Sequence record: PQ471515.1
Reading direction: 5' to 3' (one strand)
DNA: 64,000 bases
The notes under the pieces: generated by a model
Databases searched by the model: none
Seen by the model: the letters and a program-made list of their open reading frames with translations, nothing else
Told to the model about the DNA's origin: nothing
Translations under genes and position numbers: made by a program
Part shown: one piece after another, positions 28,640 to 51,942 of the stretch
Layout: the number at the start of each line of letters is the position of its first letter
Numbering within the stretch: the stretch's first letter is position 1

Positions 28640-29068
28640 ATGAATATCGAACAAACTATCCGTAACCACTCTTTCTTCGCTGCTGAAACTGGTCGTGTAA
28701 TCGAGAGCGTCAAAATTGAAGAACTGATGATTAACGTTAAATATAAAGAACTGAATGATGAGATTAGCAGCACCATTTGTGCACTACGTGCTCCATTCCG
28801 TTCTGAAGCAGCTAAGAAACCTGCCTATGTACTGGCGATTGCATTAGGTTGTGTAGTGAAATTGGTCGTTGATGAAAATCAACTAAATATCAAAGTTGCT
28901 CCAACCAACGATGAAGAAAACATCGACCTGAACTTTGAAGGTAATCTGGCTGAAGACGTATTCTTCCAACAATCACTGGTTTATGATTTCCGTACCGTAA
29001 CTCATGACCATATCAACTTTGTCAATGAGATGGTTGACATTGTAGCTGAATACGAAGCTTCCCTATAA
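28640..29068 (+). CDS. EExxFQxS-motif family paralogue
   Basis: LAEDVFFQQSLVYD near the C-terminus. Confidence 0.75.
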   Translation: MNIEQTIRNHSFFAAETGRVIESVKIEELMINVKYKELNDEISSTICALRAPFRSEAAKKPAYVLAIALGCVVKLVVDENQLNIKVAPTNDEENIDLNFEGNLAEDVFFQQSLVYDFRTVTHDHINFVNEMVDIVAEYEASL

Positions 29069-29124
29069 TTAGATTAACAAAAGCCTCCGTAATGGGGGCT
29101 TTTTCCAACATAAGGATATGTATA

Positions 29125-29676
29125 ATGATTGACCAAATTAAAATCCTAACTGAACAAATCACTGATTTTCTAGCAGATAAAGATGGATTCAGTACTGAAG
29201 TTAAAATGCATGGTGTTAGTCTCGATGTAACTGCACCAAATGGCGAAACAACCAATTATGATATGTATGAAATCCTACTTTATACATTGGCTGTTCGTAA
29301 ACTTGGTAGTGATATTGAACTAAACATTAACAAAACCGAGAACGGTGACCAAGTGTTTGCAATCAACACTGGTGCACAAATGGACGTGGTAGCTGAAATC
29401 AACAAAATCAACCAATCTTTTGTGGGTTTCAAGCATGATACAATCCAATCTGTGTTCCTGGGTAAACAAACCGGAAACAGCCACTGTCCTTATTGTGTAA
29501 TGACAACCTATAAGAATGGTAACTGGATGCGTCAGGATCTAGTACTTGCTGAAATGCTTTATGCAATCACACACGGCCTAGAACTTGAACTTGATGATAG
29601 CGTGTACTGTTTCAAGAAAATCCGTAAACTTTCTGGTGATATACAAGCTCAATTAAAAGAATTAAATGATAAATAA
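29125..29676 (+). CDS. Hypothetical protein
   Basis: Start moved past the terminator at 29078-29104 to the ATG after AAGGA. Confidence 0.7.
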   Translation: MIDQIKILTEQITDFLADKDGFSTEVKMHGVSLDVTAPNGETTNYDMYEILLYTLAVRKLGSDIELNINKTENGDQVFAINTGAQMDVVAEINKINQSFVGFKHDTIQSVFLGKQTGNSHCPYCVMTTYKNGNWMRQDLVLAEMLYAITHGLELELDDSVYCFKKIRKLSGDIQAQLKELNDK

Positions 29677-29787
29677 TTATACCAGTAATGGTTAACATTA
29701 TCATGTTACTTTCCTCCCTTACATAATAATGATGCGTTATTATTTTATTGTATTATTCCCCTTTTTCGTACAAAATCTTTTTCGTAC

Positions 29788-29812
29788 TGCCCCGACCTTC
29801 GGGGCATTTTTC
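29788..29812 (+). terminator. Rho-independent terminator
   Basis: TGCCCCGA/TCGGGGCA plus TTTTT. Confidence 0.8.
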
Positions 29813-29833
29813 TTGTCTAAATTTTGAGGTTCT

Positions 29834-30229
29834 ATGAATAATACTATTGGTAGTACAATATCTAAACCACTCTCTTATTACCTTGAAAAATTCAGAAGTA
29901 CAAATGGTAAAAAATTTAATGGTATATACCAATTCTCACATAAAGAATATATCACAGTTGATTGTTATTCAAATAAACTTATGTACGTAGATGATACTGA
30001 ATACTGTATGAAATTGTCATTGGATGTAGAATTAGATAAGTTAACATTTATTGAATATACATCCAAAAGAACATCATTTCTTGGTAAATGTAATCGAAAA
30101 GTATATAAAAATATTTCAATGTACTTAAATGAAGATTACCACTTCCAACAAACAACGATTGAAGATGTTCTATTCAGTACTGAAGAATTGAAAGAACTGT
30201 ATCACTGGTATGAGCAATTCACATCTTGA
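29834..30229 (+). CDS. EExxFQxS-motif family paralogue
   Basis: LNEDYHFQQTTIED. Confidence 0.75.
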   Translation: MNNTIGSTISKPLSYYLEKFRSTNGKKFNGIYQFSHKEYITVDCYSNKLMYVDDTEYCMKLSLDVELDKLTFIEYTSKRTSFLGKCNRKVYKNISMYLNEDYHFQQTTIEDVLFSTEELKELYHWYEQFTS

Positions 30230-30284
30230 CATTATCGTGGGTTTATCCTACACTGTAAGATAATGATGCATAGAGGATAAATTT

Positions 30285-30695
30285 ATGAGTTTAGATTTAC
30301 ACAATGAACTAAAATATTATTTCGATTTGGATATATCACATTTGAACCAACACGTCAATTATATGACTAGTACTATGTGGTGGTCTGATGAGTTTGATGA
30401 ACCAAAAATCCAACTTTGTGGTGATTTGTCCGTTTTGAGGTTGTATGCCCTTGATTCGGAAATGAATATCAAGATCACATACATACCATACACAAACAAA
30501 CTTATTGTAAACACCCTAAACCCAGTTACAGTATTGAAAATTTCTGATTTGGACACGATACAGTCAGATGAATCACTATTCCAACGTTCTTTGATTGATG
30601 ATATGGGTGGTATTTTATATGAAGATATTGTACAATTGAAGAAGATGTATAGTGAATTGTTAGAAATTAAAAACACAGTAATTGTGGGGAGTTGA
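30285..30695 (+). CDS. EExxFQxS-motif family paralogue
   Basis: SDESLFQRSLIDD; TTGACA..TACACT promoter upstream. Confidence 0.75.
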   Translation: MSLDLHNELKYYFDLDISHLNQHVNYMTSTMWWSDEFDEPKIQLCGDLSVLRLYALDSEMNIKITYIPYTNKLIVNTLNPVTVLKISDLDTIQSDESLFQRSLIDDMGGILYEDIVQLKKMYSELLEIKNTVIVGS

Positions 30696-30696
30696 T

Positions 30697-31101
30697 ATGG
30701 TAAGTTTACTTGATATTGATAATACCAGTCTAGTACTGGCAAAAAAAGGTGTAATTCCCAATTCTACAAAAATTGATTATGCAGTTATTGAAACAAATAT
30801 TGGAAATATCTGGTATGACTCCGAAAGGGATATTGTGATTAGCTGCGTAGACAGTGACCGTGCTGAGTGTTGTAGGGTTGGTCATGACGGGCAATTTATT
30901 TTCGAATTCCGTTACTGGAAAGATGCTAAATTCCATCATGAGCATGTTTCAATTACAGGTGTGTATTGCACCGAAGAATCGTTCTTCATGGATAGTACTG
31001 TTAATGATTTTGGTTCAGTTACATTTGAGTACTATAAAAAAGTATACAACGTATCCAGAGAAGTAATGCGAATCATCAGAAATGCTGAGGGTCAAGATTA
31101 A
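30697..31101 (+). CDS. EExxFQxS-motif family paralogue
   Basis: CTEESFFMDSTVND. Confidence 0.75.
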   Translation: MVSLLDIDNTSLVLAKKGVIPNSTKIDYAVIETNIGNIWYDSERDIVISCVDSDRAECCRVGHDGQFIFEFRYWKDAKFHHEHVSITGVYCTEESFFMDSTVNDFGSVTFEYYKKVYNVSREVMRIIRNAEGQD

Positions 31102-31102
31102 C

Positions 31103-31477
31103 ATGACTACTATATATGACATTCTAGGTGACTTGAATAAAAATATAGATAATGATTTTGTTATTGTTGGAACTACACAAAATATAATTCATCTTCCATT
31201 GGGTACACCAGATAGGTTAATTTTTAATATATACGGAAAAACACTGACATACCTACACAATGGTATGGTTATATTGGTACTTGATATTAAAGAAAATACA
31301 ATACGATATGCATATGACTTCAACGTTTATTGGTCAAGAACCCATAGTATTGATATTGAGGAAGATGAACTATTTCAATTGTCGTTAATCGAGAAAAATG
31401 TAATAGGAGTTACCGAAATTGGCATTGTTAAAAAAGCATTAGAATATGTAAATAGCAAATTAAATGGTGAGCTATGA
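31103..31477 (+). CDS. EExxFQxS-motif family paralogue
   Basis: IEEDELFQLSLIE. Confidence 0.7.
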   Translation: MTTIYDILGDLNKNIDNDFVIVGTTQNIIHLPLGTPDRLIFNIYGKTLTYLHNGMVILVLDIKENTIRYAYDFNVYWSRTHSIDIEEDELFQLSLIEKNVIGVTEIGIVKKALEYVNSKLNGEL

Positions 31478-31929
31478 TGAAAATTGATGAAATAAAAAAT
31501 CATTTTGAAATTGCATTGTCTTGTAAATTTGATGGCTCTTATGTTCCTGATCCAGAAGAGATAATTAGAATTTCCACATCGTTTTCGGAAGAGTACAATG
31601 TTCTTATTGAGAAAACATATGACAGCACTGAACTCGCATTTTACAATAAGAATTCACGAACAACAACATTTATATTATTATATAACACAACATCGGATAT
31701 AATAGAAATTATAACATGTAAAACAAGCAAAGATATACATTATGAGACTATCTCAAATGTGAGTTATTGCTCAACTGAAGAAGGATACTTTCAGGAATCT
31801 CTTGTTAAAAATTTAACAGTTAGTTATTCTGATTTAAGCACTATAATCAATTGTGTTGAAAAGCTAAATGATTTCGTTCTATCTATGTTTGATATCACAG
31901 AGCAAAACCCGAAGGTAATCAAATGCTAA
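31474..31929 (+). CDS. EExxFQxS-motif family paralogue
   Basis: STEEGYFQESLVKN. Confidence 0.75.
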   Translation: MMKIDEIKNHFEIALSCKFDGSYVPDPEEIIRISTSFSEEYNVLIEKTYDSTELAFYNKNSRTTTFILLYNTTSDIIEIITCKTSKDIHYETISNVSYCSTEEGYFQESLVKNLTVSYSDLSTIINCVEKLNDFVLSMFDITEQNPKVIKC

Positions 31930-32378
31930 ATCCAGGACAGTTTTTCCATTTACTTAGTATTACACCTATACCGGATTTAATCAGTGAAGCGAATCAATAT
32001 CGTGATATAGGAATTGTATCTATGGAATACGATTCACCTGACTTTAAATGTTACGTAACATATGATTTGGTAGCCTATGAGTCAGAAACTGAGATAAAAA
32101 AACCATCATACATTTTTGTGTTCATATATAATGATTATAGTGGTGATCTACTCAATGATGTTCATATTGACACATTTGAAATATGTGATAATATTATAAC
32201 AGATGATTCATCATGTACATTTGATTTATCAGAAAACAGTACTGAAGAGGCACTTTTTCAGTTGAGTACAGTTAGTAACACTGTACTAACTCTTGATGAC
32301 ATTGAGAAATTTAAAGAACAGCTTGACGCAGTACGTGAGATGTTCTATAATCATTATCCAGAAATCGAGTTCAATTAA
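31923..32378 (+). CDS. EExxFQxS-motif family paralogue
   Basis: STEEALFQLSTVSN. Confidence 0.75.
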   Translation: MLNPGQFFHLLSITPIPDLISEANQYRDIGIVSMEYDSPDFKCYVTYDLVAYESETEIKKPSYIFVFIYNDYSGDLLNDVHIDTFEICDNIITDDSSCTFDLSENSTEEALFQLSTVSNTVLTLDDIEKFKEQLDAVREMFYNHYPEIEFN

Positions 32379-32392
32379 CTAAAGGTATCAAA

Positions 32393-32653
32393 ATGACTAA
32401 AGTAGTTCGTAAACGCCACATGATGAACATGGATGAATTTCGCACCTTTGACAAATACCGTACTATGTTTCGTATGCTGTCACAGGGCCGTCCAATCGTC
32501 ATTGTAACGGAGAATTACATGTCACCTGAGATGATGTTCGGTAATTATGAAAAGGTCTTCATGTTGTACGTGAAGCGTGAATTGCTAACGATTAAGACCT
32601 TAGCTGAAGCTACAGATGAAGATATGGATGGTGATAATACATTTACCATGTGA
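32393..32653 (+). CDS. Hypothetical protein
   Basis: 86 aa, AAAGG SD. Confidence 0.7.
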   Translation: MTKVVRKRHMMNMDEFRTFDKYRTMFRMLSQGRPIVIVTENYMSPEMMFGNYEKVFMLYVKRELLTIKTLAEATDEDMDGDNTFTM

Positions 32654-32731
32654 GGAAATATATGGCAGAAAAACCAAAAGAACCGTTAGACCGTGATGAT
32701 GATTTTTACGACGAACGATATGGGGAATCAG

Positions 32732-32983
32732 ATGAGTGAACATCGTGCAGTACTTAAAAAGATTTTAAATGAACTTGGTGATGAGTTTAATGTTACTGAA
32801 GAAGAATATCAATGTTGGAAGAAGGATTTTGAACTCCTTGCTGAGTATGATAAAGTCTTCAATATGATTGGTGTCATTAGCCAGTACTTACTTGGTGGTG
32901 GTCGAGCCAGTGCTTCAATTCTTGCATCTGCGATCATCTGTACTTCTCGATGGTGCGATGAAAAAAGTCTGGAAGATTTCTAA
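32732..32983 (+). CDS. Hypothetical protein (preceded by a 25-aa acidic mini-ORF at 32662-32739)
   Basis: Start moved to 32732; the mini-ORF has a GAGG SD. Confidence 0.6.
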   Translation: MSEHRAVLKKILNELGDEFNVTEEEYQCWKKDFELLAEYDKVFNMIGVISQYLLGGGRASASILASAIICTSRWCDEKSLEDF

Positions 32984-33035
32984 ATAAGATGCTATAATGT
33001 ATTATAGTACCTTAACAATATAAAAAGGATTTTAT

Positions 33036-33896
33036 ATGAAACCTATCAGAGTACTGTCACTTTTTAATGGAATGAGCGTTGGATATATGGCATTGGCAGA
33101 TGCAGGTATTCCAGTTGAAAAATATTACTCATCTGAAATTGACAAGTACGCAATTGCTGAATCTTCCGAGAATTTTCCTGATATTATCCAGTTAGGTGAT
33201 GTGACTAAGTGGAAAGAATGGGATATTGAGTGGGATAAGATAGATTTACTCATGGGAGGATTCCCATGTCAAGCCTGGTCTGTTGCTGGTAAGCAAGGTG
33301 GCTTGAATGATATACGTGGACAGTTATTTTTGGTTATGGTTGATATTTTTGAGCACATCAAAAGTGTAAAACCAAACTTGCAATTTCTGTTCGAGAATGT
33401 TAAAATGAAGGAAGATTTCAAAGAATACATTAATAGTATTTTAGGAATCACACCAGTACTGATAAATTCCCAGCATTATACGCCTCACTTCAGGCAGAGA
33501 TACTACTGGTGCAGTACTGATAAGCTTTTTATACCACCTGCATTATCAAATGCCCCTAAACTTCAAGATATCATTGAAGATGGTTGGTACACTGACAGAA
33601 CCGCTTCGTACTGTATAGATGCTAACTATTTTAAGGGTGGTGATTGTAACCAGTACTTTAATAAATCAAGACGACAGTTGGTTTTTCGTGACCCAACGAT
33701 TAATCGTCAATATCTATTGGAGAATGGTAAAAGAAATATTGACTATAGACACTTAAGTGTAGTAGAATGTTGTAAATTACAGGGTATTCCTGTAGATTTC
33801 TTTAAAGTGTCTAGTAAGACACAAGCATACAAAATGCTTGGGAATGGATGGACTATGCCAGTTATATCACACTTACTAAGAGAGATATTCTTTTGA
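33036..33896 (+). CDS. DNA cytosine-5 methyltransferase
   Basis: Motif I SLFNG, motif IV GGFPCQAWS, motif VI FENV, motif VIII Q.R.R.YW, motif X YKMLGNGW. Confidence 0.92.
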   Translation: MKPIRVLSLFNGMSVGYMALADAGIPVEKYYSSEIDKYAIAESSENFPDIIQLGDVTKWKEWDIEWDKIDLLMGGFPCQAWSVAGKQGGLNDIRGQLFLVMVDIFEHIKSVKPNLQFLFENVKMKEDFKEYINSILGITPVLINSQHYTPHFRQRYYWCSTDKLFIPPALSNAPKLQDIIEDGWYTDRTASYCIDANYFKGGDCNQYFNKSRRQLVFRDPTINRQYLLENGKRNIDYRHLSVVECCKLQGIPVDFFKVSSKTQAYKMLGNGWTMPVISHLLREIFF

Positions 33897-33898
33897 AC

Positions 33899-34378
33899 AT
33901 GAAGAACTACCCCACCTATACTGAACGTGTAATGAAATTTCAACGTCAGTCATCAAAGGAAGAATTAGAATTTAATTTGTACTATCCTAATATTGGTGAT
34001 GAGGTATTCTATTGTTCTCATACAAAGAATGGAACTTTACTTAAATCCGGTAAAGGTATTATTGTTGATATGATTCGCACTTTCAAAGGTAAACTTAATG
34101 TAATGTACAAAGTACAAGATTCAAGTACTGAGTGCATTCATGAAGTGATGCATAATATACCTGCATATCCAAAGGATTTTGTTGAGCTAATATCTCGAAG
34201 GGAGAAACCTATGTTTTATTGTGGTTATGACAAACTAACCAAACAAATTATTCCTAATACTATGGGAAAATTTAAAAGTGATGTTAAAACTGAACTTAAT
34301 AAGAAATTAGGTTCATCATGGGAAACTGAAAACGAATTCATCGAAATTCGTTTGATTGAAGTTACTATACTCGATTAA
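33899..34378 (+). CDS. Hypothetical protein
   Basis: Start moved to 33899. Confidence 0.7.
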   Translation: MKNYPTYTERVMKFQRQSSKEELEFNLYYPNIGDEVFYCSHTKNGTLLKSGKGIIVDMIRTFKGKLNVMYKVQDSSTECIHEVMHNIPAYPKDFVELISRREKPMFYCGYDKLTKQIIPNTMGKFKSDVKTELNKKLGSSWETENEFIEIRLIEVTILD

Positions 34379-34420: not shown

Positions 34421-34936
34421 ATGACCGTTCCTTATGTTAAAATTATTAATAATATCCTTGATTCGTGGGAAGATGTTATTACTGGTAAAAAGAACCCAAT
34501 GCCAGTACACGCACTAACCGGAAGACTACAATTCAGAACGTCAAACAAAACTGAAACTTTTAATAATCATGATGTTCACATTACTATAAAATCACCTGTA
34601 CGTATTGTAATTAAAAAAAATCAAGATGATGAATTGACATTATCTATTGGTAGTGATAAAATCATTTTAAGTAATTTATCCGAAGAAGAATTCTTTCAAC
34701 GAAGTACTATCATCGACATGAAAGATTTCACATATGAATCATTGGTTGAACTCAATACACGTTTCAACGATATTCAGGAACGATTGCGACCAATCCTCCG
34801 TAAAGAAGAGGAAGCCTGGAATGAAAGTGTGAGAAAGATGCAAGAAATGTTGAAAGAAAATATTAACAATCTGGGTAAAGCTACAATGGAATTTGGTAAA
34901 TCTTTTAAACTGAACTTTTCAAAGGATCGTAAATGA
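34421..34936 (+). CDS. EExxFQxS-motif family paralogue
   Basis: LSEEEFFQRSTIID; follows terminator at 34385-34407. Confidence 0.75.
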   Translation: MTVPYVKIINNILDSWEDVITGKKNPMPVHALTGRLQFRTSNKTETFNNHDVHITIKSPVRIVIKKNQDDELTLSIGSDKIILSNLSEEEFFQRSTIIDMKDFTYESLVELNTRFNDIQERLRPILRKEEEAWNESVRKMQEMLKENINNLGKATMEFGKSFKLNFSKDRK

Positions 34937-35388
34937 AAATTGATAATTTGATTCATGTATTAGGGACTTTACATAAAATATTATTACATCTTAACGAGAT
35001 GAATAAACTAGGTTATAATGTCCATAATGTATTTGAACCTACATTTAAATATAACTCAATCACTGGAGATGGTAATTACATAATCGAATATACATATGAA
35101 ACCGATCCAGACTTCTATCCTCTTACGTTGAGAATTTATCCAACAAATCCGATAGGAATTCACGACATATCATCAATTTCACTTGATCCAGATGGTGAAA
35201 CGAGTATTGAATACAATAATGATTCAAAACCAGAATTTTACATTGATGACATTAAAAAGTTGTTCAATGATGAATATGTTTTCCAACAAAGTACTGTGCA
35301 TGATGTTGGTAGTACTACTGGGCAATTTTGGAATACATGTTATTATCATATGATTGAAATTTGTAAATTACTAAAAGGTGTTGAATAA
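34933..35388 (+). CDS. EExxFQxS-motif family paralogue
   Basis: FNDEYVFQQSTVHD. Confidence 0.75.
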   Translation: MKIDNLIHVLGTLHKILLHLNEMNKLGYNVHNVFEPTFKYNSITGDGNYIIEYTYETDPDFYPLTLRIYPTNPIGIHDISSISLDPDGETSIEYNNDSKPEFYIDDIKKLFNDEYVFQQSTVHDVGSTTGQFWNTCYYHMIEICKLLKGVE

Positions 35389-35771
35389 TGAAATACTGCA
35401 TTGAAGTACATTACACTACAGGTGATACTGAAAATTGTTATGACGTTCTTAATACAATTGATATTCAATGGTCTTCTAAAGAGGAAGCAGTTGCTGCTTT
35501 ACAGTGCCTAAAAGAGCATTGGGTGTTTTATATGAAGCAAGATAATTGCTATACAAAAGAACACGAAACGATCATGGAAAATGCTAAACAAAAAGAGTGG
35601 TTTGACCCAATATCACCAGCATATTCATTCTTGGTTAAAGTTGGTGATGTGACAGTTCCATTACGAACACCGTGGAACGGCTACTTTGAAACTCTTCATA
35701 ATGCACGAGTTGTCGCTGTTGATAACCCTGAACAAATCGATTTCGATTCATTGGACTGGAAAAAACTATGA
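35388..35771 (+). CDS. Hypothetical protein
   Basis: 127 aa, coupled. Confidence 0.7.
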   Translation: MKYCIEVHYTTGDTENCYDVLNTIDIQWSSKEEAVAALQCLKEHWVFYMKQDNCYTKEHETIMENAKQKEWFDPISPAYSFLVKVGDVTVPLRTPWNGYFETLHNARVVAVDNPEQIDFDSLDWKKL

Positions 35772-36211
35772 CAGTACTGCACCGATTGAAGAAGGTTAAG
35801 CATCCAGTTGTATATGAGGACTGGAAACGACAGAAGTTGCTGGGTGATTTTTATTACCCAAAATCTAAAGTTCTTGCGAATTCAAGATGTACATATTTCA
35901 AACATAATGATAAAGATACAGTATTTGTTGAAATGGGTTTCAATCCATCAAATACAATGTTCAGCACTAACCAAACATTTTACAAATTTCATATCCAAAA
36001 AGATTCATTTTCTATCATGATTTTAAAACTTTTAGTTGAAGATCTGCTATACCGTGGTGAACGTGTTCCTTTATCATTAGTGGATATTCCTTATAATAAT
36101 TTAGAGGAAATGTACTTCCAACAGTTGACAGTACAAGAAAACTTCGGTATGATAGGACTTCAAGAGTTAGAGATGATTAAGCAAATTCGTGATATCTACT
36201 TTAAGGAGTAA
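35768..36211 (+). CDS. EExxFQxS-motif family paralogue
   Basis: NLEEMYFQQLTVQE. Confidence 0.7.
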   Translation: MTVLHRLKKVKHPVVYEDWKRQKLLGDFYYPKSKVLANSRCTYFKHNDKDTVFVEMGFNPSNTMFSTNQTFYKFHIQKDSFSIMILKLLVEDLLYRGERVPLSLVDIPYNNLEEMYFQQLTVQENFGMIGLQELEMIKQIRDIYFKE

Positions 36212-36683
36212 CTATGCCAGTACGTAACAGTACTTCACGCTTTACGCTTCAACAGAAAGCAGATCTTTTGAATATGGCAAACAAAGATTCTAATTTTCAC
36301 TATCTAGTACTCGGTGGTTCAGTTGAAAAAATTGATCTACGTGAGTGTATGAAATAATACAAAGGGGACTAAAATGAGTCTACGTGAATCATGGGAACAA
36401 TTTAAAGAAGAGATTGGTTATCGTGGTGTCAAAATCGAACCAATCAATCGCACCGAAAGCATCAAAGCTAGTACCAATGGTACTACCTATGATCGATATG
36501 ATGAAAAGTATGGTTTACATTCTAAACCAAAGGATACTGAATAATGGTGTATACTAACATTTTTACTGGTATTATGCGTAAGTTTGTTAATGGTACTGGA
36601 TATGTATCCAATGACAACGGTAGTACATGGGTAAAAAATAATACGTCCGAATCTTTAGTGAAAAGTCTTCCGTATTATAAAGC

Positions 36684-36712
36684 TTGACACATGAAAATGG
36701 AGTATGTATAAT
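36684..36712 (+). promoter_or_regulatory. Sigma70-type promoter
   Basis: TTGACA-N17-TATAAT. Confidence 0.8.
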
Positions 36713-36729
36713 ACTCCTATATTAATCAA

Positions 36730-37317
36730 ATGAGGATATACGAAATGGCTGGTGTTGATAAAATTTGTGAATTCAGTGGCGATTATGAAGGTTACGAAAT
36801 GTACAAGTCCAAGCGTAATCACATTCAAGTTCTGTCAAAGTACCGTAAAGAATTCCGAGGCCACAAAGCAACATTGTATGTTTTTGAGAATGGATATTCT
36901 GAAGTTTTCACAAGTGGTGGGTACAGTACAGCTAACATGGCACATATCAACCCAAACCCAACTGAAGATGATTGGAATAGTGGTAACGCTTTTCGTATTT
37001 CAATTTTGAATAAAATGAATCGTTACGACCGTTATTGTACATTCTTTGAAAATATTTCAGAATACAAGCAAGCATTAAAGAAATATAATCAACGCTTACT
37101 AATGAATTATGATTACATTCTTCATGTTCCTACTGTTCCAGGTCAGGTTAATGGTCTGTATACGAACAGTACACATGATTTAACTGCGGTGATGCGTCGC
37201 CTCAAACGTATGTTGGGTTGTGGTAATTTAACAATCAAGGTTATGCGTAATGAATCAATGTATAACTTTTTAGATGTACTACACTACACATTGAAGGATA
37301 ATAATGGAAACGATTAA
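36730..37317 (+). CDS. Hypothetical protein
   Basis: Long ORF after the promoter; true start may be ATG 36745. Confidence 0.7.
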   Translation: MRIYEMAGVDKICEFSGDYEGYEMYKSKRNHIQVLSKYRKEFRGHKATLYVFENGYSEVFTSGGYSTANMAHINPNPTEDDWNSGNAFRISILNKMNRYDRYCTFFENISEYKQALKKYNQRLLMNYDYILHVPTVPGQVNGLYTNSTHDLTAVMRRLKRMLGCGNLTIKVMRNESMYNFLDVLHYTLKDNNGND

Positions 37318-37501
37318 GTTTATTTTTGAGGTGTTTGTTGCATTCATCTTATGTATTGTATCTATTGCTATTGCTTTAATTCCAGTCATCGTTTACCAAG
37401 TTAATGGTGGCACAGATCCAACAGTTGATATGTTACTTCGTTGTGTTGGATTCTGTATATGGTTGGTGATGTTTATGTACTATATGCATCTTGAGGAATA
37501 A
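37304..37501 (+). CDS. Small membrane protein
   Basis: Two TM helices. Confidence 0.7.
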   Translation: METIKFIFEVFVAFILCIVSIAIALIPVIVYQVNGGTDPTVDMLLRCVGFCIWLVMFMYYMHLEE

Positions 37502-37503
37502 TT

Positions 37504-38334
37504 ATGTCATTGGAAAAAGTAATTATTTCTGAATTCCGAAAGTACATCATTGATTGTGATAGAGATACCCAGCGTAAGTTCAATGAGTATCTTGACAAAT
37601 ATCCATATTTGATGTTTAATCCATTTGAAACTCAATCCGATGTTAATCTTGGATTTTACATTGGGTTTACACAACGAATTCTACAACAATATGAGATGAA
37701 ACAGCCAGAGGTTTGGGTAGAAACTGATTCGAATGAGACGAATGTTTTTTATCTGTACTCTTATTATGCGGAAATTGTTAGTTCAATGACGCTAGAAGGG
37801 TATCTATTCGTCAAAACATCTGATATTGAAAAAATATACATAGAACCTGTATCTTTGGATATGGTTGCCCAGCTTCCAACAGTTCAATATTTGGATGCAA
37901 ATGAGTTGACATATTCGGTGTTTGAGTACCTTAACCGAGACGATTTAACTCAAGAAATTGAGAATATGGTTTCAAAATATACCACAACTCTTATATCTAA
38001 TGGTTCACTTAGAATAGAACTGATTTACGACGATACTAGTACTAATGCAGTACGAGGAACTCGAATTGGAAAAGTTACTATACGTGTTGTCCACAATGAT
38101 GTAGTACTTGGTTATATTTCGAAACGTGGTCATGACTTGTGTTTGATTAACACATATGTTATTGAACGAAAAGAATGGAACGATTTAATGCAAAAAATCG
38201 TAGACGGAAGTGGAATTCGTGATATAATGTGTAATGAGGTAGTGACAATGAATCCTGACATTGACTGTGATGTATATTTCCCAGTTCCTGGATTTACTCT
38301 ACGTAATTTTGGTACATTAAAGGGTACAAAATGA
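37504..38334 (+). CDS. Hypothetical protein
   Basis: 276 aa, GAGG SD. Confidence 0.75.
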   Translation: MSLEKVIISEFRKYIIDCDRDTQRKFNEYLDKYPYLMFNPFETQSDVNLGFYIGFTQRILQQYEMKQPEVWVETDSNETNVFYLYSYYAEIVSSMTLEGYLFVKTSDIEKIYIEPVSLDMVAQLPTVQYLDANELTYSVFEYLNRDDLTQEIENMVSKYTTTLISNGSLRIELIYDDTSTNAVRGTRIGKVTIRVVHNDVVLGYISKRGHDLCLINTYVIERKEWNDLMQKIVDGSGIRDIMCNEVVTMNPDIDCDVYFPVPGFTLRNFGTLKGTK

Positions 38335-40606: not shown

Positions 40607-40999
40607 ATGACTGAATCTGAACTACGTGAAATGATAGATTTCATTTATGAAATGGTACAAGATAAAAATAACATCAATACAATTGCATCTGGTCCAAGAC
40701 AAATTGGTAACCAAATAACATATTCTTTGTCCTTATGGTTACACCCGTGCATTAAGGTTGATTGTTTGTATTTCCGTCCTGATATTGATGCTTATTATTT
40801 TGTCAATCATGATGCATTAATGAAACCACATAATCGTCCAGTTGATGATAACTTTGTGACGCACCCATTTTACCTGGCTGATTCCGAAGAGGATGAGTTT
40901 CAAAAGAACACAACGTTAAGCCCAGGTGAAATTTGCATCCCTTATGAACTAAAAGATAAAATGATTTACATCACAGAAGTTATGAAAACATGCTGGTAA
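40607..40999 (+). CDS. EExxFQxS-motif family paralogue (variant)
   Basis: DSEEDEFQKNTTL. Confidence 0.65.
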   Translation: MTESELREMIDFIYEMVQDKNNINTIASGPRQIGNQITYSLSLWLHPCIKVDCLYFRPDIDAYYFVNHDALMKPHNRPVDDNFVTHPFYLADSEEDEFQKNTTLSPGEICIPYELKDKMIYITEVMKTCW

Positions 41000-41616: not shown

Positions 41617-41617
41617 C

Positions 41618-42106
41618 ATGCCGATTCGTGGTGTACCAGAACCATTAATGGAAGTTATTAAGCATGTTCGCATTGGAGATCGAGAAGTTAATCTGCGACG
41701 TGGTAATATATATTACTTTAAAACTTCAGAAATGAGTTCTGTGCAGATTGTCATTGGTACATCTATTATGATTACTCGCGTACTTGATGGTAGTACTGAC
41801 TTCGTTGGATACAATGTACTTACTAATAAAGTAACACATACATATAAATGGAGTGGATATAAAACTATTAAGTACGAGTTTGACTTAGCTAGAACTGAAG
41901 AAGAACGATTTATGCTGAGTACTATCAATCCAGCAAACTATCCTGACCTTGATGCATTTTTGCTAATTTTAAAATTGTATAATGAAGCAAATCAGAAAGC
42001 CAAAGATTATGATAGAATCATGTATGAACGCCGAAAAGAACGTGCACAAAAAAGTTATGATCTGTATGATAGCCCATACGTGAAATATAGTAAGGGGTCG
42101 AAATGA
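41618..42106 (+). CDS. EExxFQxS-motif family paralogue
   Basis: RTEEERFMLSTIN. Confidence 0.7.
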   Translation: MPIRGVPEPLMEVIKHVRIGDREVNLRRGNIYYFKTSEMSSVQIVIGTSIMITRVLDGSTDFVGYNVLTNKVTHTYKWSGYKTIKYEFDLARTEEERFMLSTINPANYPDLDAFLLILKLYNEANQKAKDYDRIMYERRKERAQKSYDLYDSPYVKYSKGSK

Positions 42107-42858: not shown

Positions 42859-42907
42859 CTAGTACTGATATATATGCTATTCTTTTGTTTTAAACAGGAG
42901 AACAATA

Positions 42908-43411
42908 ATGCTCATTACGCATGTACCGGAAAGTATTACTGAGATTTTAAGTAAAATTAATGTTAATGAATTTGAACGAACAGTTCGAAAACAAGGTACT
43001 TATCACTATAAGCACAAAGATGGTGAACATCAAATAAGCTTAGATCAGAATTATCAAACTCTAACAATTAAAATGGTTACTCGCTGGAATTTTATTCGTA
43101 AAGATACTATTATCTGTGATTTTGGTAAAAGACTACTTAGAAAATGTTTCTCTGAAACAAATGGTATCTATCCAAACCCGAATAGAATTTTCACATATCA
43201 ATACATCACAGATGAAGATGTACATTTTCAAGAGAGTTTGGTGTGTGATAATAAGTACTTTCCAGCATTTTCAGATAATTTGAAGTTAAAAGAACTATAT
43301 AACTATTTCTTAAACGACAATATTCTGTGGGATGAAGAATTAAAACAACGACAGATAGAACGTGAAAAGAAAAAAGTCTGGACTGGTTCACATTGGATGC
43401 AACGTAAATGA
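42908..43411 (+). CDS. EExxFQxS-motif family paralogue
   Basis: ITDEDVHFQESLVCD. Confidence 0.75.
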   Translation: MLITHVPESITEILSKINVNEFERTVRKQGTYHYKHKDGEHQISLDQNYQTLTIKMVTRWNFIRKDTIICDFGKRLLRKCFSETNGIYPNPNRIFTYQYITDEDVHFQESLVCDNKYFPAFSDNLKLKELYNYFLNDNILWDEELKQRQIEREKKKVWTGSHWMQRK

Positions 43412-43578
43412 CACATGAAGAATGGATGTCTATTATGAAAGAACGATATGATCTGTTTGGGAATGGATTTCGTGATGGTCATTACGATATTTTACGAGAC
43501 AAACATCAGTTCGATTTATATGTACTAGATGAGGATGGAAATCGATGGTTCATATATGAGCTTGCATTTAGGGATTAG
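43408..43578 (+). CDS. MTHEEW-family micro-protein
   Basis: MTHEEWMSIMKERYDLFG..RDGHYDIL..LDEDGNRWFIYELA; ATGA-coupled; not in ORF track. Confidence 0.75.
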   Translation: MTHEEWMSIMKERYDLFGNGFRDGHYDILRDKHQFDLYVLDEDGNRWFIYELAFRD

Positions 43579-43588
43579 AAGATATATT

Positions 43589-43896
<308 letters not shown>

Positions 43897-43904
43897 TTCA
43901 GTAT

Positions 43905-43938
<34 letters not shown>

Positions 43939-43951
43939 CGAGGAATCCAAA

Positions 43952-44149
43952 GTGACTAAAGCAGAACTTGTAGCATTATTGGAATCATATCCCGATGATG
44001 CATGTATTGAAGTTGTTCATAGTGCGAGGCATTTTGACATTGAAGATGTAGTACGTTATAATGACAAAGGTGTACTCATCATGGAACTATGTATTGGTGA
44101 AATGAAAACTGTACCCGAATCAGAAAAACGTAAAAATAGTAAACCGTAA
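43952..44149 (+). CDS. Hypothetical protein
   Basis: GTG start, GAGG SD, TTGACA..TATAAT promoter upstream. Confidence 0.7.
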   Translation: MTKAELVALLESYPDDACIEVVHSARHFDIEDVVRYNDKGVLIMELCIGEMKTVPESEKRKNSKP

Positions 44150-44159
44150 GGAAAATAAA

Positions 44160-44378
44160 ATGGAATCTACTCTATTAGAAGTTATTAACTCATTAAACGC
44201 TGGCGACAATGTTCAAGTACTCCTTCAGGGATACCGTGTAAAAGGTTCAGTAGTTTTAGTTAATGACACCACTGTTGTTGTAACTGAAACTAACCCGTTT
44301 GACAGTAATGAACTTGCTAATATCCATATTGATATTAAAAGTATTATTGGTGTTGGTGTAACTAAACCACAAGAATAA
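44160..44378 (+). CDS. Small beta-rich hypothetical protein (Sm/LSm-like possible)
   Basis: V.V.L.G..V.G.V..V.D..VVV.......IHIDIKSIIGV pattern. Confidence 0.55.
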   Translation: MESTLLEVINSLNAGDNVQVLLQGYRVKGSVVLVNDTTVVVTETNPFDSNELANIHIDIKSIIGVGVTKPQE

Positions 44379-44399
44379 CAATTGTTATTGGGGATTACT

Positions 44400-44672
44400 A
44401 TGCATTTTGAAAAATTCAATACAAATCGTAACACACGCATTGACGTTCTTTATGAAACACAAGACTCAATAAGCATTCGTACACGTAGTGGTGATGTATA
44501 TCATGACTGTACTATTGGTTGGGAACAGGGAAGAACACGTAGTGCAGAATTCGATAACTATCGCTTCTACCAAGGGGACACCACAATCTGGCCTGAACAC
44601 GTAGAAGATATTGCGATTGAAGATGAACATAAAGATGAATTTATAAAATTTAATCCCGAAACCGAATCATAA
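44400..44672 (+). CDS. Hypothetical protein
   Basis: Start moved to 44400. Confidence 0.65.
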   Translation: MHFEKFNTNRNTRIDVLYETQDSISIRTRSGDVYHDCTIGWEQGRTRSAEFDNYRFYQGDTTIWPEHVEDIAIEDEHKDEFIKFNPETES

Positions 44673-44677
44673 ATATT

Positions 44678-44805
<128 letters not shown>

Positions 44806-44809
44806 AAAT

Positions 44810-44895
<86 letters not shown>

Positions 44896-44912
44896 CAATT
44901 AAAGGTTAAACC

Positions 44913-45073
<161 letters not shown>

Positions 45074-45077
<4 letters not shown>

Positions 45078-45234
45078 CACATGAAGAATGGATGAATGAC
45101 ATTAATTTTAGATATTCGGGTATCGGTAAATGGCTAAAGTATCATTGGGAATTCATTTCAGAGCCACATCTGTATGATAAACTTATCAACGATCCAGAAT
45201 ATGAAATGTACTTAATTGAACTACTGGTACGAAT

Positions 45235-45238
<4 letters not shown>
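45074..45238 (+). CDS. MTHEEW-family micro-protein, tandem unit 2
   Basis: 54 aa; about the first 50 nt nearly identical to unit 1. Confidence 0.8.
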
Positions 45239-45825
<587 letters not shown>

Positions 45826-45883
45826 CTAAATAGTTCAGTACCAAGGAGATTAATATGTTTAAAGATGAACGTCCAGATTTGTA

Positions 45884-45922
<39 letters not shown>

Positions 45923-45928
45923 GAATTC

Positions 45929-46268
45929 CACAATCAGACGTATATGGTGTAAGTTACGTCGATGTAATCCAGAACAAGATCTCTGGTACTCTAGGAAGTG
46001 GTGAATGTTAACCTAGACGGGTTTGATAATTGGACGATAGGCAATTATTACTTGACTAGCAGGTTTAAACTAGAGGTGACAGTCCTTTACCAAACTGGAA
46101 AACCGGATGGACTTTTATTTAAAAGGGTAAGGCGTGGAAATATGTTTACAGTAGTTGCTTTTAGTAGCCTGTACGCCCCACGTCAAGGTAGCCGAAAGGC
46201 AAGTTAAAACGGGTGGTTATAAAGCTGAATTAACAGCGGCGTTTAAAAGCGTCACCATCCATTTTTTT
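45929..46268 (+). ncRNA. Candidate structured ncRNA (about 340 nt)
   Basis: Own promoter at 45894-45922, many hairpins, ends GGGTGGT..ACCATCC plus T-run. Confidence 0.55.
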
Positions 46269-46285
46269 TAATTAAAGTTGGTGAT

Positions 46286-46925
<640 letters not shown>

Positions 46926-46998
46926 CTTTTTAATTTAAAAGTACTTTACTGTAGTGTTTAGTACCGTATAATGTAAACAAAAGGATAAAATAAAACTC

Positions 46999-47523
<525 letters not shown>

Positions 47524-47545
47524 TTAAAAAATCAGTACTTTATTA

Positions 47546-47930
<385 letters not shown>

Positions 47931-47947
47931 TTCACATGATATAGGGA

Positions 47948-48469
<522 letters not shown>

Positions 48470-48527
48470 CAGGGGAGGTTGTGATTCCCGATTCAGTAGC
48501 TTATAAAGCAGTTCCGTGTGTGCCTAT

Positions 48528-48580
<53 letters not shown>

Positions 48581-48581
48581 T

Positions 48582-48619
<38 letters not shown>

Positions 48620-48638
48620 AGAGGTACTTCGAGTATGC

Positions 48639-48764
<126 letters not shown>

Positions 48765-48766
48765 TA

Positions 48767-48848
<82 letters not shown>

Positions 48849-48908
48849 GAAGAAACTGCTAAACAGCTTGAAGTACTTTGTAGTGCTGCACCTATGCCGA
48901 CTCTTGGC

Positions 48909-48960
<52 letters not shown>

Positions 48961-49020
48961 TGTAAGATGACCTCCCCTCAATGCGAAAGAGTATAGAGAC
49001 TTGTTGGATATCTTACTTCT

Positions 49021-49103
<83 letters not shown>

Positions 49104-49106
49104 TCT

Positions 49107-49182
49107 GCCGTTTTAGCTCAGTTGGTAGAGCAATCCCCTTGTAAGGGATAGGTCATCTGTTCGAGTCAGATAAACGGCACAA
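49107..49182 (+). tRNA. tRNA-Thr(TGT) copy 2
   Basis: GCCGTTT/AAACGGC, loop CTTGTAA; ends CAA. Confidence 0.92.
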
Positions 49183-49196
49183 AATAAAGGTACACT

Positions 49197-49613
49197 ATGA
49201 CATACAACATTGTTAAAATGGTGAACTATGTATTAAAAAACAACACATGGTCACTGCATGATGTACAATTAGAAGATATTGGTGAAGTTAGAGTATTTTG
49301 CTATGATGGCGATTTGAACGAAACCACTGATTTGAGTAAATGTTTTAATATTTTTCTTGGTTATGAAATCAATAATCATTTTTATTCATTTGATGTGTAT
49401 TTTGAACGAGTTAAAATCAGAATTGCTAATGTAAATAGTGATTATTATGACACTAGAATTGAATTGAATTTTGACGATATTGATACTGAAGAAAAATTCT
49501 TTCAGTACAATCTCGTAAACGATCTAAATGGATTGACATTTGAGGACATTAAAGCTATACTTAAAGTTCAAAGATTGATTCCAGAAGAGGTTCTAAATCC
49601 CTTTAATGACTAG
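49197..49613 (+). CDS. EExxFQxS-motif family paralogue
   Basis: DTEEKFFQYNLVNDLNGLTFEDI. Confidence 0.75.
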   Translation: MTYNIVKMVNYVLKNNTWSLHDVQLEDIGEVRVFCYDGDLNETTDLSKCFNIFLGYEINNHFYSFDVYFERVKIRIANVNSDYYDTRIELNFDDIDTEEKFFQYNLVNDLNGLTFEDIKAILKVQRLIPEEVLNPFND

Positions 49614-49965
49614 TTTAATAACTCGTATAATGCAAGATGTTCGTAAGAATCTTCATACTGGTAATTTTGATGATCCTAACATAAAAATATTATGTTATGA
49701 TGTATTCACACTGGTACATCCATCAGAATCTAATAATTTATACATAGCATATACTTCTCCTAATATTTTGTATCAATTTGATTTATATAGTACAATGGCT
49801 AAGATAACATTAGATGTTTCTAAGGAGCCAATTTTTATAGCAGTACGTGATTTTGAGTACACAGAAGAGTCATTATTCCAGTACTCAATGATAAATGACA
49901 TTGGTGACTTGACATTAGAAGAGATAAATGTTATAGTTGGTATGTGTCGTTTGATTAATCCATAA
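49606..49965 (+). CDS. EExxFQxS-motif family paralogue
   Basis: YTEESLFQYSMINDIGDLTLEEI. Confidence 0.75.
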   Translation: MTSLITRIMQDVRKNLHTGNFDDPNIKILCYDVFTLVHPSESNNLYIAYTSPNILYQFDLYSTMAKITLDVSKEPIFIAVRDFEYTEESLFQYSMINDIGDLTLEEINVIVGMCRLINP

Positions 49966-49978
49966 CTCGGAGCTTAAT

Positions 49979-50170
49979 ATGTTTTTGAATTTGTTATGCT
50001 TATTTGGTCGTACATTGGTTCTTGCTATTATTCATACACCTGGTATTCGTAATTATGTTTCTTATGAATTTAAGAAAAATTACCACAACAATACTGAAGT
50101 TCGTGCAACTAAGATGTGCAAAGACTTCAATGGAGATGTTCCACCATTCAAGAAGTACGAGGATGAATAA
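49979..50170 (+). CDS. Hypothetical protein
   Basis: 63 aa, GGAG SD. Confidence 0.55.
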   Translation: MFLNLLCLFGRTLVLAIIHTPGIRNYVSYEFKKNYHNNTEVRATKMCKDFNGDVPPFKKYEDE

Positions 50171-50454
50171 TGGAATTTATTGTTGCACCTGATGAACTAA
50201 AAACATTCACGTTCCGAGACAATAACAATTATCCTTATACAAATCATTCATTGAATTCATTGCATGTTATATCAATCATTGCATCTGAATACAGAGACAA
50301 TCCATGTATTGATTTTAAAACCACTGATGGTGAATATACATGGGTAGTTCCGAACGATAAATACAGTTATCAGGGTGCAGTGGAGATCCGCGACTCGATT
50401 CTAAAGCAAATCGAAGATGGACATACTCATCCTAAACTAAACATTCAGTACTGA
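50170..50454 (+). CDS. Hypothetical protein
   Basis: 94 aa, coupled. Confidence 0.7.
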   Translation: MEFIVAPDELKTFTFRDNNNYPYTNHSLNSLHVISIIASEYRDNPCIDFKTTDGEYTWVVPNDKYSYQGAVEIRDSILKQIEDGHTHPKLNIQY

Positions 50455-50694
50455 AATCGTTTAACCGGATAGCTTCTAGTCGGTACTGAATTCCTCCTTT
50501 TGTCTAGAAGCTATCACTCTTTTAAAGTATAATGATATCACCCTCATGGTTCATTATATTCATTACCCTCTAACAGTATCTTTTTTATTCCTCTTTGATA
50601 CTGTATTTTAGAAGTTGACATTTTTACTTCTACTGTGTTATACTTAAGGCTGATTCATTATGAATCGGCCTTTTTTCTTGTGGGGATTAATGTA

Positions 50695-51111
50695 ATGAAT
50701 AAAGAAGTTATTAGTTTAATTGATGAGTATATCAACCAAACATATCGTTTGATATTTTTAAATGAATTTGAGTCCAGAACAACGTATTATTCTGGTGAAT
50801 ATGAGATAATGACTGGATCATTTCTTAACGGATACATGGAGTTTTTAGAACAAAGCGATAATGTTTTCATTTCCATATCTGAAAAACATGGTGATGATTA
50901 TGTTATTGATGTATGGCCTAATAAAGTAGAGATTGACACTACAAAGAAAATTGTAATTGATGTGGATGAATCGTTGTATGATTTAACTGAAGATATGTAC
51001 ATGCAACTAAATTTCGTTTACGATCTAACTAACATAAGTTATTCTAATCTAAGTAAATTATTTTATATTTCTGGTGTACTACATAATAACGTACAACAAA
51101 ATAAAGGATAA
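50695..51111 (+). CDS. EExxFQxS-motif family paralogue
   Basis: LTEDMYMQLNFVYDLTNISY; TTGACA..TATACT promoter upstream. Confidence 0.7.
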   Translation: MNKEVISLIDEYINQTYRLIFLNEFESRTTYYSGEYEIMTGSFLNGYMEFLEQSDNVFISISEKHGDDYVIDVWPNKVEIDTTKKIVIDVDESLYDLTEDMYMQLNFVYDLTNISYSNLSKLFYISGVLHNNVQQNKG

Positions 51112-51119
51112 ACATTTAA

Positions 51120-51524
51120 ATGTTGAAAATTCCACCACATACACTATCTATGCTAATTGAAAATGGTGTAATATTTTCTGAAGGGTGTAGTTCATTCTAT
51201 ACATGTGACGTGGACCCGTACACATTTGAATACCGTTCATTTAAAAATACATTGAGTGTTCCATGTGAAGCTTCTGACAACATTGTACTTGTCGTTTCGT
51301 TCTATGGTGTACCAAACTTCTTCATTGATATATATTATGATTCTTTTAAGATACAAACATACGATCATTTTCTTGGTGAAGTGCTCTTGCAAATGCAGAT
51401 TGAACATGTTACTATAGATGAAGATATGTTCTTTCAGCTATCTACTGTATACGATATGTGTGGGTTGACAGTTGACAACATTAATGGTATCTTTGAAATT
51501 GCCAGAACCCTACGAGGAAGATGA
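51120..51524 (+). CDS. EExxFQxS-motif family paralogue
   Basis: IDEDMFFQLSTVYDMCGLT. Confidence 0.75.
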   Translation: MLKIPPHTLSMLIENGVIFSEGCSSFYTCDVDPYTFEYRSFKNTLSVPCEASDNIVLVVSFYGVPNFFIDIYYDSFKIQTYDHFLGEVLLQMQIEHVTIDEDMFFQLSTVYDMCGLTVDNINGIFEIARTLRGR

Positions 51525-51525
51525 T

Positions 51526-51942
51526 ATGGTCAAAATTTTAAGTGACAATGCGGTTGATATTGTCATTGATGTACTTGAAAACAGTAATACATTTGAGAAG
51601 AAACACAGTACTGTATACTTCGGTGAAGATTGTTGGCTAAGTTATACATCTAATAATTCGTTTATAATTCGTGTTGAAAAGGGTGATGTTGGATTAACGA
51701 TACATGCCTCCTATACTAAAACTGACAAACAAATAACTGTCATCGCTAACAAGCCAAGTACATCCGATTTCTGGGATAGTATTGATGATTGTGAACACTA
51801 CACGTCAACATTCTATGATACAGAAGAAGAACATTTCATGGATAGTACTGTTAAAGAATTATCTGTTCCATTTAAACTTATGAAAGCAGCAAGAGATTTT
51901 ATTTTAAAATACAAAAAAACAGGAGTTTATGATGCAATTTAA
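51526..51942 (+). CDS. EExxFQxS-motif family paralogue
   Basis: DTEEEHFMDSTVKE. Confidence 0.75.
   Translation: MVKILSDNAVDIVIDVLENSNTFEKKHSTVYFGEDCWLSYTSNNSFIIRVEKGDVGLTIHASYTKTDKQITVIANKPSTSDFWDSIDDCEHYTSTFYDTEEEHFMDSTVKELSVPFKLMKAARDFILKYKKTGVYDAI

Follow-up and report, generated by a model that had tools for sequence, protein, structure and literature searches.

Do small phage proteins that resemble one another in a single C-terminal motif, and hardly anywhere else, form one family, and what could such a family be used for? The question was raised by a stretch of DNA from Escherichia phage Turkey3 (PQ471515.1, record positions 248001–312000; hereafter the window, 64,000 nucleotides at its full length), in which an earlier note had described about 21 open reading frames (ORFs) united by the motif (S/T)-E-E-x-x-F-Q-x-S-x-(V/I)-x-D. 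Turkey3 is a Rak2/121Q-like jumbo myovirus with a genome of 361,208 bp. The G+C content is 31–39%, nearly every gene lies on the + strand, and seven transfer RNA (tRNA) genes are located at window 44716–49180. The genomes closest to window 28000–52000 (record 276000–300000) in a megablast search were 121Q/PBECO4-like jumbo coliphages, with 86–99% identity. All 21 ORFs are annotated in the record as coding sequences (CDSs), each for a 'hypothetical protein'. They were found, two of them less securely, to belong to a lineage-specific multigene family, that is, many co-oriented tandem paralogues, the nearest of which are adjacent. Members are named below by their start position in the window (e.g., 49197).

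Motif and membership of the family

All 21 starts open + strand ORFs of 118–171 amino acids (aa); the motif-bearing ORFs claimed in the earlier note were all present, and the five example sequences quoted there were exact. A loose regular expression for the motif matched 19 of the 21 members and none of the 316 other window ORFs of at least 40 aa. Genome-wide, the same expression matched 45 ORFs, as compared with 1.0 ± 1.0 in residue-shuffled ORFs, which confirms the enrichment over a shuffled proteome. When hidden Markov models (HMMs) were built from 20 members and the omitted one was searched for, 19 of the 21 were recovered at rank 1 with E values from 2e-4 to 9e-16, and the best non-member reached E ~0.1–0.5. 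Chance or non-coding ORFs were ruled out by these leave-one-out profiles, the shuffles, the reversed-sequence controls and a ratio of non-synonymous to synonymous substitution rates (dN/dS, omega) below 1.

Three genes were less securely placed. Member 42103 was not recovered by the leave-one-out search (E 0.49), nor by a larger profile (E 0.52, rank 71 of 3188 ORFs), and it is a possible member by its motif remnant, size and array position only. The membership of 40607 is marginal, and it is regarded as probable; its closest paralogue is 46286, which itself gave an E value of only 0.0016 when the larger profile was searched against the whole genome.

The N-terminal regions, which had been said to share almost no visible identity, proved to be as divergent as claimed. 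Leave-one-out profiles made from the N-terminal parts only gave no family signal, and hhalign comparisons of N-terminal-only alignments of four orthologue groups gave probabilities below 1%. When the orthologue groups were compared by hhalign at full length, just ~42–47 columns could be aligned, beginning at the last strand and ending at the C-terminal helix. Even in profile–profile comparison, sequence similarity does not extend beyond the last ~45 residues. The distance of the motif from the C-terminus, given earlier as 25–60 aa, holds for 18 genes, in which the motif starts 33–51 aa from the end; in 34421, 41618 and 42908 it lies 66–85 aa from the end. The members are acidic, with a median isoelectric point (pI) of 4.6 and a pI below 5 in 16 of 21, versus 29% of the neighbouring ORFs; 31923 is the most acidic member of the window (pI 4.05, net charge −23), and the exceptions bear basic tails.

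Genome-wide census and distribution

A profile made from the 21 members and 115 database representatives (136 sequences) was searched, piece by piece, against all stop-to-stop ORFs of the Turkey3 genome. The iterated census recovered 50 ORFs at the first pass and 69 at convergence, and none in reversed sequences. The 69 members are all on the + strand: 41 form dense arrays at record 28.5–70 kb, 4 lie at 107–122 kb, 21 in the window and 3 downstream of it, at record 314, 320 and 338 kb. The size of about 21 genes given in the earlier note is correct as the window count, two of them weakly supported, and is an undercount for the genome. The 69 genes represent ~11% of the 610 CDSs and ~32 kb of DNA; the proteins, mostly acidic and soluble and each with one domain, range from ~105 to 230 aa, and those of 191–233 aa showed no extra Pfam domain. 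Two further ORFs of the first array (record 50397–50990 and 52173–52790) carry the motif by regular expression and are outside the converged profile set; therefore, the count of 69 may be slightly low. The family is hidden because pairwise phmmer (E <=1e-5) breaks it into small clusters of 11, 6 and 3.

An HMMER scan of 1.84 billion representative proteins returned 158 clusters (50% identity) at E <=1e-3, which is a lower bound for public data. Nearly all of these are 110–200 aa long, with the same motif 30–45 aa from the end. Every named public member comes from a Rak2-like jumbo phage of Enterobacteria, such as the Salmonella phages Munch, 7t3 and SE_PL or Escherichia phages, or lies on a contig of ~350–360 kb. 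Likewise, tblastn with 30697 gave matches only in Rak2-like jumbo phages of Escherichia, Klebsiella and Salmonella. By all of these named matches, the family is restricted to one virus lineage, the Rak2-like phages. The syntenic 40 kb of Klebsiella phage RaK2 contains 12 members around the same Dcm methylase gene and tRNA cluster, with a best identity of ~29%; since the arrays are syntenic, they are old and predate the split of these phages' genera.

When 185,579 bacterial and archaeal species genomes were searched with a stringent DNA pattern for the motif, no true match was found, which is weak evidence because the pattern finds just 2 of the 69 Turkey3 members. The single match, in a Bacteroidales metagenome-assembled genome, was rejected as chance, as it lies on the opposite strand within a long 818-aa gene, which we take, without a search, to encode the phenylalanyl-tRNA synthetase beta subunit. 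The same pattern matched three jumbo-sized IMG/VR contigs, and arrays were found in each. The uncultivated viral contig IMGVR_UViG_3300007747_000009 (108,897 bp, G+C 31%) has seven members in 9.4 kb and possibly represents a lineage that falls in none of the named Rak2-like genera.

Predicted fold and the motif helix

The AlphaFold model of 49197 (predicted local distance difference test, pLDDT, 86.2; predicted template modelling score, pTM, 0.80) consists of a helix at residues 5–15, seven strands between residues 20 and 91, the motif helix at 98–107, a loop, and a helix at 115–125. The model of 41618 (pLDDT 83.6, pTM 0.74) consists of a short helix, seven strands, the motif helix at 94–103 and a long basic helix at 111–150. 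These two proteins have no pairwise similarity at E <=0.01, yet the order of their secondary-structure elements is identical. Independent models in BFVD, made for uncharacterised proteins from the phages RaK2, CBB and GAP32 and from Erwinia phage pEa_SNUABM_47, also matched the 49197 model; the best of these matches, at ~16% identity, had a probability of 1.0 and template modelling (TM) scores of 0.53–0.62. The members are thus predicted to share one topology, in which an N-terminal helix is followed by an antiparallel sheet of seven strands, the motif helix, a loop and a C-terminal helix. The agreement of the two AlphaFold models with the BFVD models supports the proposal of a single fold beneath the hypervariable N-terminal sequence.

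The conservation of the motif columns is given in Table 1. The motif positions 100, 104 and 108 are variable and lie on one helical face. A Ser or Thr followed by acidic residues is a helix N-cap pattern, and a weaker repeat of it was found at the start of the next helix (positions 114–117). The second conserved element that had been reported after the motif, a loop with a capped helix, is real and is weaker than the motif, with column shares of 30–60%. Among 91 orthologues of 49197, the motif was least variable (0.15 bits) and the loops were most variable (0.76 bits).

Table 1. Conservation of the motif columns (49197 numbering) in the genome and in representative sequences
Position	Residue	69 genome members	144 representatives
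97	Ser or Thr	59%	81%
98	Glu	75%	95%
99	Glu	69%	86%
102	Phe	95%	99%
103	Gln (otherwise Met)	95%	85%
105	Ser	73%	96%
106	Thr or Leu	85%	96%
107	Val, Ile or Leu	94%	96%
109	Asp	50%	75%

The motif blocks had the highest pLDDT in both models (92–96). Because the motif is the best-ordered helix of the domain in both of them, it is predicted to be an integral helix and not a free linear docking peptide; the latter idea, which was implied when the earlier note had the motif dock on one partner, was not borne out by the models, in which the variable positions fall on one face of an ordered helix, as would be expected if the helix packs into a fold or an interface. A short linear motif in a disordered tail was also considered, and does not fit the same ordered helix (98–107 in 49197, 94–103 in 41618) and its pLDDT.

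Selection and exchange within the arrays

Selection was compared between Turkey3 and phage JP4, using 18 family pairs and 20 neighbouring non-family genes. The family pairs had a median identity of 78% and a median omega of 0.25, versus 86% and 0.14 for the neighbours (Mann–Whitney p 0.02 on omega). Pooled omega was 0.32 before the motif, 0.11 within its 13 residues and 0.28 after it, so that the contrast between motif and N-terminal region, proposed earlier as a check, was 0.11 versus 0.32. Per gene, omega ranged from 0.08 to 0.56. The family is under purifying selection, which is strongest in the motif; positive selection was not seen across the family pairs of the two phages.

Divergence from JP4 along window 27500–51100 was mosaic, and the identity of adjacent members varied from 100% to 44%. 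Identical neighbours had a synonymous divergence (dS) of ~0.1, and the most diverged pairs had a dS of 1.2–1.7, which is saturated. Member 31474, for example, has 49% aa identity to its JP4 counterpart with a dS of 1.4, and no counterpart of 42908 was found in the syntenic JP4 stretch. This pattern suggests a cassette-like exchange of alleles within the arrays. The nearest paralogue of 49606 is its neighbour 49197 (E 4e-14) and that of 51120 is its neighbour 50695 (E 6e-09); such closeness of neighbouring genes fits tandem duplication.

Promoters and expression context

Sites resembling sigma-70 promoters (at least 11/12 consensus positions) in window 28000–52000 numbered 17 on the + strand and 0 on the − strand, as compared with 1.4 expected per strand, and a maximum of 4, in dinucleotide shuffles. 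Four of the matches are perfect, with starts at 36684, 38544, 43889 and 44034. Several sites of at least 11/12 lie just upstream of 45469, 49606 and 50695; they include an 11/12 site at 45410–45437, directly upstream of 45469, and one ending at 50644, by 50695. A 10/12 site at 30226–30254 is located just upstream of 30285. Many of the sites lie within the 3'-terminal part of the gene before them. As far as consensus matches can tell, the description of tandem arrays lying among tRNAs under early-type promoters holds, and the pattern would fit early transcription by host RNA polymerase. In the CBB genome paper, a region of RpoD-like promoters, which may or may not include the CBB family members, was assigned to early host-takeover genes (PMC5259590).

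Possible functions of the family

The reading that we favour, with a confidence somewhat short of even, is that the family consists of cytoplasmic proteins expressed early, which bind or inhibit different host, host-defence or competitor targets and form a repertoire built on a common scaffold. The motif would then be a folded helix, its N-terminus capped by the Ser/Thr and the two acidic residues; its aromatic and aliphatic residues would pack against the sheet, with the near-invariant Gln, Ser and Asp along the edge of the face so packed. This helix and the capped one after it would form a constant C-terminal clasp, and the sheet and loops would be free to vary, giving each paralogue a surface of its own. 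Such variable surfaces would bind different targets, as expected of a host-takeover or anti-defence repertoire, and the conserved polar stripe may add a common interface, used either for self-association or for a shared partner.

Several points weigh against this scheme. The promoter evidence consists of consensus matching only. Other paralogues were included in the alignments behind both AlphaFold models, so the topology shared by the two is not fully independent; the BFVD models are free of that problem. The burial of the motif is deduced from helical periodicity and pLDDT only, and the near-invariance of its polar residues, which exceeds usual packing needs, would favour a functional site. 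Moreover, overall omega is well below 1, without an arms-race signature, and since the dS of the diverged pairs is saturated, these pairs would represent old alleles exchanged by recombination and not fast adaptive change.

The polar conservation is also the starting point of other proposals. In a more far-reaching version, which we consider rather unlikely, the polar helix face would be a common interface that connects all ~69 paralogues to a single hub of the phage or the host, or that lets them hetero-oligomerise, so as to form a combinatorial binder repertoire on a fold without a solved relative; if this were true, the virus would have something akin to an immune-receptor-like library, with host proteins or defence systems as its targets. 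A similarly doubtful proposal, close to that of the earlier note, is an adaptor or degrader library, in which the constant helix docks on one shared hub (a phage ClpP-type protease or a host machine) and the variable domain brings the targets. The retention, at 75–99%, of the motif Glu, Gln, Ser and Asp over more than 200 clusters, in proteins whose remainder is unalignable, speaks for such docking, as does the presence in Turkey3 of one clear ClpP homologue (Pfam CLP_protease, E 1e-41) and of a second, marginal one (21 bits). However, the motif is predicted to be an ordered helix within the domain and not a disordered linear motif, the Clp genes and the family are ~190 kb apart in the record with no positional link, and the annotated Clp adaptor (window 4965–5510) is without Pfam support. 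The shared partner might instead be the family itself, with the C-terminal helix-loop-helix acting as an oligomerisation module of homo- or hetero-oligomeric rings like the p32 trimer. We judge this to be improbable: the p32/C1QBP proteins have the same order of elements (a helix, seven strands and two helices) and a similarly strong acidity, their chains top the Foldseek list for the 49197 model and recur for the 41618 model, and the conserved helix face is wider than one-sided packing requires, but all PDB matches were insignificant (E >=0.06, TM 0.2–0.37) and none of the 136 members matched Pfam MAM33.

Two other explanations appear far less probable. Invariant polar residues clustered on one helix could be the active or binding site (Glu-Glu...Gln.Ser...Asp) of small enzymes or of ligand- or metal-binding proteins, which seems very unlikely given that no enzyme family was matched in Pfam, NCBIfam or PDB, that conserved residues are absent outside the one helix, unusual for an active site, and that there is no ready explanation for 69 copies of one enzyme in a genome. 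The particles of jumbo phages contain many proteins, and in relatives the neighbouring gene at window 28110–28445 carries the annotation of a virion structural protein, so the members might be virion or injected internal proteins rather than cytoplasmic early ones. This, too, is hardly to be expected: the neighbour itself does not belong to the family, no member is so annotated in Turkey3, JP4 or RaK2, the arrays are located outside the structural modules, and the main text of the RaK2 paper, for the stretch examined, names no family ORF as structural.

Whichever role applies, the conservation pattern is extreme, with one helix almost frozen over more than 200 sequence clusters and the other ~100 residues keeping only a predicted topology. 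In these coliphages, a widely isolated group of therapeutic candidates, about one gene in nine belongs to this family, and the family explains much of the genome inflation of the Rak2-like phages. Once it is recognised, ~69 'hypothetical proteins' in each genome can be annotated as a single domain. Should the variable surfaces bind different host proteins, as the favoured binder repertoire supposes, the family would be the largest single reservoir of host-takeover or anti-defence candidates in these phages and a natural, ready-made binder scaffold; should the frozen helix serve as an interface common to all, it would define a new hub in jumbo-phage infection.

Members and neighbouring genes

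The coordinates of the 21 members are collected in Table 2.

Table 2. Members of the family in the window
Window position	Strand	Length (aa)	Motif (aa)	Leave-one-out E	Remarks
28640..29068	+	142	104-116	9.5e-07 (rank 1)	pI 4.55
29834..30229	+	131	99-111	2e-04	E 1.7e-08 with larger profile
30285..30695	+	136	94-106	1.1e-09	
30697..31101	+	134	92-104	5.5e-09	M replaces Q
31103..31477	+	124	86-98	6.1e-08	
31474..31929	+	151	101-113	3.1e-09	
31923..32378	+	151	107-119	8.5e-08	
34421..34936	+	171	87-99	2.8e-07	long basic C-terminal tail; pI 7.9
34933..35388	+	151	112-124	7.3e-06	
35768..36211	+	147	112-124	2.5e-05	
40607..40999	+	130	93-105	0.035	probable member, degenerate motif; E 0.017 with larger profile
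41618..42106	+	162	93-105	2.7e-07	long basic C-terminal helix
42103..42507	+	134	98-110	0.49	possible member, degenerate motif
42908..43411	+	167	102-114	6e-07	basic tail
45469..45825	+	118	84-96	4.4e-09	between tRNA-Ser genes
46286..46657	+	123	87-99	3.3e-09 (within the 21)	weak member
49197..49613	+	138	97-109	9.3e-16	directly 3' of two tRNA-Thr genes
49606..49965	+	119	86-98	1.9e-12	
50695..51111	+	138	98-110	4.8e-06	
51120..51524	+	134	100-112	5.3e-10	
51526..51942	+	138	99-111	1e-06	M replaces Q

Several observations were made on the genes around the arrays. Within the tRNA cluster, an HNH homing endonuclease gene is located at window 46999–47523, and ARAGORN predicted a tRNA-Ser with the unusual anticodon ACT at 47585–47676; the tRNA complements of Turkey3 and JP4 differ. 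A 176-aa ORF at window 33848–34378, which overlaps the 3' end of the Dcm methylase gene, is annotated in JP4 and falls in an annotation gap of the Turkey3 record. With 84% identity and a dN/dS of 0.29 in the comparison of these phages, it is probably a real gene that is absent from the Turkey3 annotation.

Pairwise phmmer also revealed two families of smaller ORFs. One, of five members of 54–59 aa, occupies window 42679–45399 between motif-family members and tRNA-Ser (for example, 42679–42858, 44913–45077, 45074–45238 and 45235–45399). The other, at record 22460–44773, is a second large paralogue family, with 27 ORFs of 64–90 aa, and is partly interleaved with the first array of the motif family. 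Moreover, 14–17 tandem paralogues of 369–461 aa, annotated as HERC1/RCC1-like (beta-propeller repeats), lie on the − strand at record 337098–357418, and a motif-family member (record 338255–338950, + strand) is wedged among them. The ClpP-like genes were found at positions 32572–33267, 36200–36808 and 37158–37754 of genome piece L005 (of which position 397 is record 50397), one of the three being without a Pfam match.

Comparison with known families and systems

No recurrent match to Pfam was found for the 21 or the 136 members, and NCBIfam and PADLOC returned no family for the 21. When the family profile was searched against all PDB sequences, four matches were obtained, all with E >0.5, and Foldseek searches of PDB with both models gave no match below E 0.05. 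One candidate, the SAS-6 head domain (6z4a, E 1.5), in which a motif-like stretch was aligned, was judged to be a chance match, given its different topology and an E value above 1. Among the anti-defence proteins and DNA mimics with solved structures (Ocr, ArdA, Acr), AcrF1 alone appeared in the structure search (E 0.48–0.72, TM 0.22), and none was found by sequence. In PHROGs, the 21 members fell into 24 families among those listed in the scan (e.g., phrog_17453, 24941, 21500 and 23322), all of 'unknown function' and with a few weak cross-matches between them; thus, PHROGs does not recognise one family.

Previous studies have touched on paralogues in these phages. According to the RaK2 paper, ~10% of gene products are paralogues (PMC3622015), a remark that probably includes part of the motif family. 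In CBB, 22 paralogous ORFs were counted (PMC5259590); such counts miss most of the family because pairwise searches split it. In the literature searched, neither the family nor its motif, fold or size was found to be described, which, with the searches of Pfam, NCBIfam, PADLOC and PDB, agrees with the earlier view that it was undescribed.

The closest structural likeness, to the p32 family (p32/gC1qR/C1QBP/MAM33; PF02330; 1p32, 3rpx, 3jv1, 1yqf), lies in the element order, helix, seven antiparallel strands and two C-terminal helices, and in both families the proteins are small and strongly acidic. The p32 proteins are eukaryotic and mitochondrial and form a doughnut-shaped trimer. They top the PDB list for the 49197 model and recur for the 41618 model, but the superposition was not significant (E 0.06–0.5, best 0.061; TM 0.24–0.37 for the 49197 model and ~0.18–0.20 for the 41618 model). 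At E <=0.05, Pfam MAM33 matched none of the 136 members, and no p32 protein appeared in the PDB profile search. The modelled likeness is a weak lead on the fold and does not indicate membership.

A functional analogy, which is speculative, may be drawn to poly-immunity arrays (SUKH/SMI1-KNR4, CdiI, Tsi), which are tandem sets of small, often acidic, divergent alpha+beta proteins, each of which neutralises a different protein. SUKH_6 and CdiI_4 gave one weak, non-recurrent Pfam match each (E ~0.02, 1 of 136 members), and Tsi1 and CdiI chains appeared in the Foldseek tail. Unlike those arrays, the present family has no toxin partners encoded nearby and is confined to phages. In its organisation, the family resembles other expansions noted in a jumbo-phage survey, such as the ~35 zinc ribbons of Bacillus phage G (PMC7824862), where one small domain is likewise present in dozens of copies, arrayed in tandem in a jumbo-phage genome. 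Multigene expansions as such are already known from large viruses; the domain, the ~69-copy size of the family and its conservation pattern appear not to have been described before.

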